64,000 nt of DNA from Perna viridis. Lineage: Eukaryota. The notes below the pieces were generated by a model. It ran no database searches. It had not been told where the DNA came from and saw only the letters and a list, made by a program, of their open reading frames with translations. The position numbers and the translations under genes are program-made. Numbering within the stretch: position 1 is the first letter of the stretch; every line of letters starts with the position of its first letter. Positions 61,843 through 62,681 of the stretch are shown here, in pieces. The DNA lies in assembly GCA_037379345.1 (NCBI GenBank), contig CM074516.1, positions 33,021,626 through 33,085,625 of the forward strand. Reading direction: 5' to 3'.

Positions 61843-61935
61843 CTGGACTTCCTCTCTACAAGTATGGCAACATATGCCGCTGTCAGTGCAGGGATAAATG
61901 CGGGCCTGGGAGAATAGAATTGACCAAATATCTTC
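61843..61935 (-). CDS. TMEM135: TMEM135 exon 3, copy b; (R)[30 protein letters not shown](R)
   Basis: ttttttcctccag|GAAGATA...AAGTCCAG|gtatgg. The exon is 93 nt, phase 2-2. It aligns without gaps to recalled human [31 protein letters not shown]. Confidence 0.93.
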
Positions 61936-62591
61936 CTGGAGGAAAAAAATAAAATCAAAGTCATCTAAATGTTTGAACAATAATACATATTAGTCTTCAA
62001 GCCTGGCTAAAGCTTTAGTAGGATTTCAAATATCAGAAATGACAAGGTCCATGTCTTAAATCATCTAAGATTGGAAATCCATTTAATCATCAACACTTTG
62101 TCATAACAATCCAAACTTGGCTTTACAATAAACTACCAGGAGAATAATTTCAGTAAGACCTTCTTATGGCTTCAGAGAAAGTTTTTCTAATCCTAAAGAA
62201 AATGAACATCCTAAAAAGCTTTAGCCAATCTTATATGTATAACTACACTACAAAAGTGATGAAAATTCATGAAGAATCTTTCTGCATATCTGTACACAAT
62301 CATAGTTCCATTTTAGTCACACTTTTAGTCTTCTAAGTTTCTGAATATAAACTTTTCATAAAACAGCTCAACAAAAATTCACCAGAAAATGTCTTCTTCA
62401 AATTAGCATTTCTCTTTCCTTTAGCATTTAGCCAACAAAAAAAATTAGCTGATCAAAATAACTTAAATTTTTAAAAAATGAAACTGAATATCTACATCTA
62501 CTATTCCTCAATTGAAACACATGTAGTCATGTACAGTACAAATCAGCAGAAAGACCCTTGATGAATTAATTGTCACATTAACATGTAATAC

Positions 62592-62681
62592 CTGGATTTT
62601 CTCTCCAAACAGAGAGCAACTGCCGAAGCTGGTATCCCCGTAGCATAGGTAGCTAGGCGGCAGTAAGAACCTGTAAGTTTT
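62592..62681 (-). CDS. TMEM135: TMEM135 exon 3, copy a (alternative duplicated exon); (R)KLTGSYCRLATYATGIPASAVALCLERKS(R)
   Basis: Minus strand reads cttgttgctttcag|AAAACTT...AAATCCAG|gtatta. The exon is 90 nt, phase 2-2, with no stops. It ends in ERKSR like copy b and keeps the PAS-x-VA motif of TMEM135 (human [15 protein letters not shown], from recall). Confidence 0.8.

Follow-up and report, generated by a model that had tools for sequence, protein, structure and literature searches.

Two divergent tandem copies of exon 3 in a TMEM135-like gene of Perna viridis are probably an ancient duplicate pair used as alternatives

The stretch of DNA analyzed here (the window; 64,000 nucleotides, G000:C6:33021626-33085625 of the Perna viridis genome) is, by sequence comparison, spanned from end to end by a single-copy TMEM135-like gene read on the minus strand. 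When the whole genome was searched in six frames with PF15982 (TMEM135_C_rich), significant matches occurred at this locus only: exon 1 scored 42.3 bits, the exon 3b region 44.4 bits, and exon 2 24.1 bits. Exon 3b alone matched profile positions 81 to 113 with 30.9 bits (cut-off, 27), compared to 14.7 bits for exon 3a. Searching with exon 1 gave bivalve and gastropod TMEM135-like proteins as the closest relatives, and a family search that started from the Ylistrum orthologue also returned proteins named TMEM135-like. The gene had been called TMEM135 in a preliminary description made from the letters of the window; with PF15982 at this sole locus and relatives annotated accordingly, that identification holds as TMEM135-like.

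A Tim17-family exon (PF02466) lies 21 kb beyond the low end of the window (G000:C6:33000805-33000903, minus strand), in the same orientation as the gene, so that the gene would be >88 kb long and the whole window intragenic. As a single exon it scores 25.9 bits, below the cut-off of 32.7; full-length orthologues pass with 40 bits. Homology searches for this gene used single exons as queries, not a spliced model, and exons 4, 5, and 6 were located by tblastn with orthologues (Table 1). Exon 1, which is outside the window, has an ATG start and ends in phase 0. Exon 4, 10.8 kb downstream of exon 3b, is the predicted acceptor for both exon 3a and exon 3b: since exon 2 ends in AG and exon 4 starts with G, either copy joins exon 4 in frame, as the preliminary description had proposed.

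Table 1. Exons of the TMEM135-like gene in and next to the window, in the direction of transcription (window positions)
Feature	Position	Strand	Description
Exon 2	64380..64253 (window-equivalent; just outside the window)	-	128 nt; ends in AG
Exon 3a (a-type, alternative exon)	62681..62592	-	90 nt; phase 2-2; open frame; AG 62683-62682, GT 62591-62590
Intron separating 3a and 3b	61936-62591	-	656 nt
Exon 3b (b-type, putative default exon, canonical TMEM135 helix 3)	61935..61843	-	93 nt; phase 2-2; open frame; AG 61937-61936, GT 61842-61841
Exon 4	51026..50993	-	34 nt; starts with G; phase 0 end; AG/GT; tblastn with orthologues
Exon 5	44817..44752	-	66 nt; tblastn with orthologues and sequence
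Exon 6	11959..11913	-	47 nt; tblastn with orthologues and sequence

Two versions of exon 3 lie between exons 2 and 4. The spacing, lengths, phases, splice sites, open frames, and peptides first reported for them are correct in every detail when the minus strand is read. The two exons are homologous, share their phase, and are of nearly equal length, as is characteristic of tandem-duplicated exons; both align to PF15982 positions 81/84-113. The first base of each is the third position of a split Arg codon, and each ends with the AG of another Arg codon. The exon 3a product runs from the end of helix 2 through a turn into an alternative helix 3 and terminates in ERKS(R). At the DNA level, the copies are identical in 51 of 96 aligned columns. 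Three further observations in the preliminary description also stand: the last four full codons of 3a and 3b differ only synonymously, 3a has two Cys residues and is one residue shorter on translation, and the flanking introns are dissimilar (no significant similarity between the 300-nt flanks of the two exons; top match, 22 nt, E 0.065).

We scanned 1,103 open fragments of the region with a-exon and b-exon profiles made from other species, leaving the window out. Exon 3a scored 42.2 bits (E 2.8e-12) on the a-profile and 16.9 bits on the b-profile; conversely, exon 3b scored 51.5 bits (E 3.8e-15) on the b-profile and 16.3 bits on the a-profile. These scores show that the pair exceeds chance. 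The same profiles revealed no third copy of exon 3 between exon 1 and exon 5.

Intron 2 contains repeats as well. A ~205-bp element with 26-nt terminal inverted repeats (window 62971-63175; L015 4896-5100) has at least 4,745 first-look candidates in the genome, at 84 to 88% identity, and k-mer depths in the thousands in contigs of the RNA runs; it looks like an interspersed repeat of the MITE type. Near exon 2, just outside the window, are palindromic AT-rich repeats of the type TGTACATATA (L015 5956-6101; window-equivalent 64031-64176). When the 10-kb locus was scanned with Rfam, the only matches were to miRNA families, all of them sub-threshold and on low-complexity palindromes; we rejected miRNA genes at L015 5956-6101, where the sub-threshold matches were to several families, and took these matches to be low-complexity sequence.

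Splicing was examined in four public RNA runs of the same organism (X1, X2, X9, and X10; the labels are coded, without tissue), mapped to the part of the locus that holds exons 2, 3a, and 3b (L015:3400-6600). Their depth is low. The junction of exon 2 to exon 3b (L015 3860 to 6178, GT..AG on the minus strand) was found in all four: in contigs of X1, X2, and X10 (depths of 4.6, 8.4, and 6.2) and in one raw read of X9, where exon 2 was covered ~5.7-fold and exon 3b ~3-fold. First mates of the X9 reads were always on the + strand, as expected for minus-strand RNA in a stranded library; no raw X9 read fell on exon 3a, at the ~3-fold coverage of exon 3b. The junction of exon 2 to exon 3a (L015 4606 to 6178, CT..AC) was present in a single contig of RNA run X2 (depth, 3.35), in which 3a makes up ~28% of the k-mer depth signal; 3a signal was absent from X1, X9, and X10. 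Exons 3a and 3b are each joined independently to exon 2, the constitutive exon upstream of them, through GT..AG joints. No joint of 3a to 3b was listed in the four low-depth runs, nor was a skip from exon 2 to a site beyond 3b seen in the mapped stretch, which excludes exon 4.

The downstream side could be approached through the geometry of two contigs from RNA run X2, each of which consists of 30 nt of exon 2, one of the two exons, and exactly 25 nt starting with G (145 and 148 nt in total). Exons 3a and 3b have their last five bases (TCCAG) in common, and 5 + 25 = 30. In an assembly graph with k = 31, branch contigs stop k - 1 = 30 nt inside shared sequence; a bubble that closes on TCCAG plus 25 nt therefore points to the same next exon after 3a and after 3b. 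Splicing of 3a to 3b predicts instead that the suffix shared with exon 2 is AG only, followed by 28 nt of 3b in the contig, and the contig has no such sequence. We infer from this geometry, rather than from a directly read junction, that 3a and 3b run into the same downstream exon. Thus, among the junctions that the preliminary description had proposed to count, exon 2 to 3b is seen in four runs and exon 2 to 3a in one, 3a to 3b is not seen at this low depth, and those leading downstream are suggested by the contig geometry.

The exon 2-to-3b junctions, which bypass 3a in all four runs, contradict the idea that both exons are constitutive and form an internal repeat; the preliminary description had named constitutive joining of 3a to 3b as an outcome that would overturn its proposal. 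RefSeq isoforms with only the a-type or only the b-type exon, present in many species, argue against it too. What speaks for an internal repeat is a set of ab initio models with both exons in tandem (Pinctada, Patella, Haliotis rubra, Dreissena KAH, and Paralvinella), but these models, including the one from Dreissena, are probably mis-annotated, and we consider this explanation scarcely credible.

Two side observations come from the same data. At L015 6246 (window-equivalent 64321), within exon 2, all six X9 reads and the X1 and X2 contigs have C, the assembly has T (+ strand), and RNA run X10 agrees with the assembly, which looks like an exon 2 polymorphism. A protein-word search with the 40-amino-acid open frame around 3a found no match and no Logan peptide extending beyond 3a.

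Segments cut from orthologues at the exon 2 and exon 4 anchors fell into two clear types. The a-type has 30 amino acids and, in most cases, a CGIPAC-like motif together with an ERKDR-like terminus; the b-type mostly has 31 amino acids and follows F-[IV]-P-A...A-I-L-x-ERKSR. Perna 3a has TGIPAS in place of CGIPAC, and its two Cys residues lie elsewhere. RefSeq contains isoform pairs that differ only in this segment, from the gastropods and bivalves Littorina saxatilis, Haliotis rufescens, Babylonia areolata, Mytilus californianus, M. trossulus, Pecten maximus, and Dreissena polymorpha, as well as from the nemertean Lineus longissimus; a pair from the annelid Owenia fusiformis combines the a/b swap with a difference at the N terminus. 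Magallana gigas has one a-only isoform and one with both exons, and a b-type, oyster-like transcript is found among the Logan proteins. A protein-word search with the a-type region of Littorina X2 returned only the query itself. In all, coding exons of both types are conserved in bivalves and gastropods, in three annelids (Owenia, Paralvinella, and Dimorphilus), and in the nemertean Lineus. Dreissena polymorpha has, in addition to an a form (X4), an elongated b form (X2), a third, b-like variant (X3), and a form that skips all of them (X5) (X3, X2, X4, and X5 being P0168, P0169, P0170, and P0178, respectively).

The order of the two exons is conserved along with their sequences: in every model that holds both, the a-exon comes first and the b-exon second, as they do in the window. 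In the genome of Paralvinella palmiformis (L016), a 90-nt exon (13076-13165) precedes a 93-nt exon (15193-15285), with the same order and phases as in the window, and exons of 34 and 66 nt come next, again with AG/GT sites and phases as in the window. Mean identity is 0.51 between a-types, 0.49 between b-types, and 0.30 between a and b. The exons closest to Perna 3a are Mytilus a-exons (70% and 67%, the former being M. californianus X2), and those closest to Perna 3b are bivalve b-exons (65%). In a tree based on 31 usable columns, 24 a-exons fall on one side of a branch (support, 85/47; 82% of bootstrap trees). Because the a- and b-types occur in three phyla and Paralvinella has the genomic pair, the duplication is older than the last ancestor shared by molluscs, annelids, and nemerteans, and each copy has remained a coding exon from then on. 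The preliminary description had argued for an old duplication with both copies under coding selection, a view that conservation across three phyla supports, and had suggested dating it through relatives; the isoforms of other species and the Paralvinella genome place it before the mollusc-annelid-nemertean split.

This conservation bears directly on whether 3a might be a decaying pseudo-exon whose single contig is splicing noise. The a-type exon is ~51% identical across molluscs, annelids, and the nemertean and is part of an annotated isoform in many of them, and in Perna its frame and AG/GT sites are intact, it scores 42 bits on the a-profile, and it is 70% identical to a Mytilus a-exon. Decay would fit its detection in just one low-depth contig of one run, with no raw reads, and the loss in Perna of motif cysteines that most a-types keep (TGIPAS versus CGIPAC), yet the weight of these points leaves a pseudo-exon very improbable.

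The strength of the splice sites differs between the copies. Upstream of 3b, 17 of 20 positions are pyrimidines, and its donor has G at +5; for 3a the count is 13 of 20, and its donor, GTATTA, is without +5G. We infer that 3b is the default exon, because it has the stronger sites, is present in all four runs, and is nearest the family consensus. Exon 3a, whose sites are weaker and which accounts for roughly a quarter of the signal in a single run, appears to be a regulated minor exon.

Several ways of enforcing a choice between the two were considered. Steric hindrance by a short intron and a distant branch point were rejected (the intron is 656 nt long, with a proximal AG-free zone of ~33 nt), as were incompatibility of U2 and U12 sites (all sites are GT-AG, without a U12 donor motif) and frameshift or NMD, since double inclusion remains in frame. 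An inverted-repeat scan of the locus (68 pairs, mostly AT-rich palindromes) yielded no docking/selector layout. The intron between 3a and 3b does contain a 32-nt inverted repeat, 81% complementary (62264-62295 and 62536-62567; L015 4189-4220 and 4461-4492), which we rejected as a means of enforcement because a stem there would not explain exclusion. Its distal arm lies 25 to 56 nt downstream of the 3a donor, and the repeat could be the ends of a small transposon. The reading frame does not force exclusivity, which may be leaky: RefSeq includes models with both exons (Pecten X1, Magallana X1, Babylonia X1, and M. galloprovincialis X1) and models with neither (M. galloprovincialis X4 and Dreissena X5), suggesting that it may not be strict.

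The two exons might instead be independently regulated cassette exons, with transcripts that contain both or neither being appreciable and inclusion of one of the two merely the commonest outcome. The reading frame would allow this: the length of each exon (90 or 93 nt) is divisible by three, so exon 2 can be joined to exon 4 in frame via 3a, via 3b, via both, or via neither. The both-exon and skip isoforms in RefSeq, from several species, accord with independent regulation, as does the failure to find a docking/selector arrangement, a short intron, or a U12 site at the Perna locus. Annotated pairs, however, are mostly a-only and b-only, and the four RNA runs gave no 3a-to-3b and no skip joint (their depth being low and exon 4 outside the mapped stretch); moreover, two copies of helix 3, or none, would be predicted to invert the downstream topology. 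We therefore regard independent cassettes as unlikely. The favored interpretation, which we hold with good confidence, is that 3a and 3b arose by an ancient tandem duplication of TMEM135 exon 3 and are used as alternatives. The claim in the preliminary description that they are a mutually exclusive pair is supported as far as direct splicing of exon 2 to each of them and the isoform pairs go; 3a is the minor form (one contig, in one of four runs), and strictness is questionable.

TMEM135 has been linked to peroxisomes, mitochondrial dynamics, and lipid handling, and its molecular activity is not settled. To place the swapped segment, we used AlphaFold models of the two deposited Mytilus trossulus isoforms, made with alignments of deposited orthologues. 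The b form was modeled with a pLDDT of 91.2 and a pTM of 0.84, and the a form, from a shallower alignment, with a pLDDT of 75.3. The order of helices is the same in both, helix 3 being modeled at residues 102 to 120 (b) or 104 to 117 (a). The swapped segment (residues ~95 to 125) takes in the final turn of the long helix 2, a turn, helix 3 in its entirety, and the ERK-x-R turn that leads into helix 4, in agreement with the earlier proposal that the isoforms swap a loop and a hydrophobic helix. The a and b versions occupy the same Pfam profile positions, with b much nearer the family consensus (PF15982 scores of the Mytilus isoforms: b, 172 bits; a, 150 bits). Parts of the b-isoform model show a weak, partial resemblance to Tim23, Tim22, and a Tim17-like complex I subunit; a Foldseek search of the PDB with this model found nothing at E ≤ 0.001.

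If 3a and 3b are indeed used as alternatives, the mature mRNA would carry one or the other between exons 2 and 4, giving two proteins alike except for ~30 residues that lie in the N-terminal TMEM135_C_rich domain and extend to the conserved ERK-x-R turn. Each copy would add one membrane-embedded helix, and exactly one would be required because, with two or none, all that follows would have inverted topology. Exchanging the helix would be expected to retune the helix 3 face of the N-terminal helix bundle, and this could affect a partner, lipid or substrate interaction, or targeting, a functional difference that is wholly predicted.

Comparison with other animals addresses whether the pair is older still. 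The whole-gene loci of Hydractinia (a cnidarian) and a priapulid have one copy of exon 3 each, and so does the Saccoglossus (hemichordate) locus, which is a partial model. At Hydractinia L017:2618-2752, the parts homologous to exon 3 and exon 4 form one exon, without the intron that follows exon 3. The amphioxus Branchiostoma (L018) has two 90-nt copies (2999-3088 and 3172-3261) only 83 nt apart, and its RefSeq isoforms X1 and X2 differ solely in these copies; an intron of 83 nt could by itself stop the joining of both. The upstream amphioxus copy is b-like (20.9 bits on the b-profile versus 13.1 on the a-profile) and the downstream copy a-like (24.2 bits on the a-profile versus 13.0 on the b-profile), the reverse of the lophotrochozoan order. 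In the tree, the single exons of a crinoid, a holothurian, and hemichordates adjoin the a-types, and arthropod exons fall among the b-types. The vertebrate TMEM135 proteins among the matches have one version of the segment only.

With ~30 residues to work from, AU tests rejected neither a shared origin of the amphioxus and lophotrochozoan pairs (p-AU, 0.53) nor an independent duplication in amphioxus (p-AU, 0.27). The number of events required favors independent duplication: two gains, compared to one gain, at least three losses, and a change of order. That the a/b pair goes back to the bilaterian ancestor, and so predates Lophotrochozoa, is in our view rather doubtful. A separate candidate mutually exclusive pair exists in the same domain: TMEM135-like RefSeq isoform pairs of a holothurian, an ophiuroid, and a sea urchin (P0222/P0199, P0225/P0099, and P0227/P0192) differ only in the exon 2 segment (columns ~50 to 95, helix 2).

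Full-text literature searches combining TMEM135 with mutually exclusive or duplicated exons or with splicing retrieved no description of the pair. It is nevertheless undescribed rather than unseen, being present without comment in RefSeq isoform sets: the "transmembrane protein 135-like" pairs represent the same event, their members differing only in the segment homologous to 3a/3b (among them X1/X2 of Littorina saxatilis, Mytilus californianus, Haliotis rufescens, and Lineus longissimus and X2/X3 of Pecten maximus). They differ from the present case in that they are automatic annotations without comment; Perna proteins were not among the matches, and Perna 3a is without the motif cysteines.

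SLC25A3 exons 3A/3B are an example of tandem duplicated exon substitution. The TMEM135 pair resembles the set of such events in human genes, in which homologous adjacent exons of near-equal length and the same phase replace one structural element (PMC9741552, PMC8373072); as a rule such events are ancient, and purifying selection acts on both copies (PMC9741552, PMC8373072). More broadly, tandem-duplicated mutually exclusive exons are a well-known class (PMC9741552, PMC9013439). In many well-studied cases exclusivity is achieved via frame and NMD, steric hindrance, or competing RNA structures, whereas none of these was found at Perna TMEM135.

By analogy, the closest functional parallel is exons 6a and 6e of COQ-2, a mutually exclusive pair in nematodes, flatworms, annelids, and molluscs (PMC7434440). 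As in TMEM135, a tandem pair of equal phase exchanges a segment that is embedded in the membrane, the protein is one of an organelle membrane, annelids and molluscs have conserved the pair, and one copy is similar to the pan-animal exon. The gene is a different one, and its switch between ubiquinone and rhodoquinone synthesis was shown experimentally (PMC7434440), whereas the comparison for TMEM135 is sequence-based. Oyster alternative oxidase is likewise an organelle membrane protein of a bivalve, with isoforms reported to arise by alternative use of a duplicated exon (PMC5589949), again in another gene.

For lophotrochozoan genomics, the TMEM135 pair would add, beside COQ-2 and AOX, a deeply conserved alternative exon pair in an organelle membrane protein. 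Were its origin bilaterian, it would be among the oldest retained alternative-exon switches, one copy having been lost repeatedly (in vertebrates, ambulacrarians, and ecdysozoans). If the amphioxus duplication was instead independent, exon 3 would have been duplicated in at least two lineages and a third time in Dreissena, and exon 2 in echinoderms, which would make the N-terminal helices of TMEM135 a recurrent target of helix swapping. Two versions of a helix held apart by selection point to N-terminal helix 3 as a functional surface, and they offer a natural pair of variants for comparing localization, partners, and rescue of knockouts.
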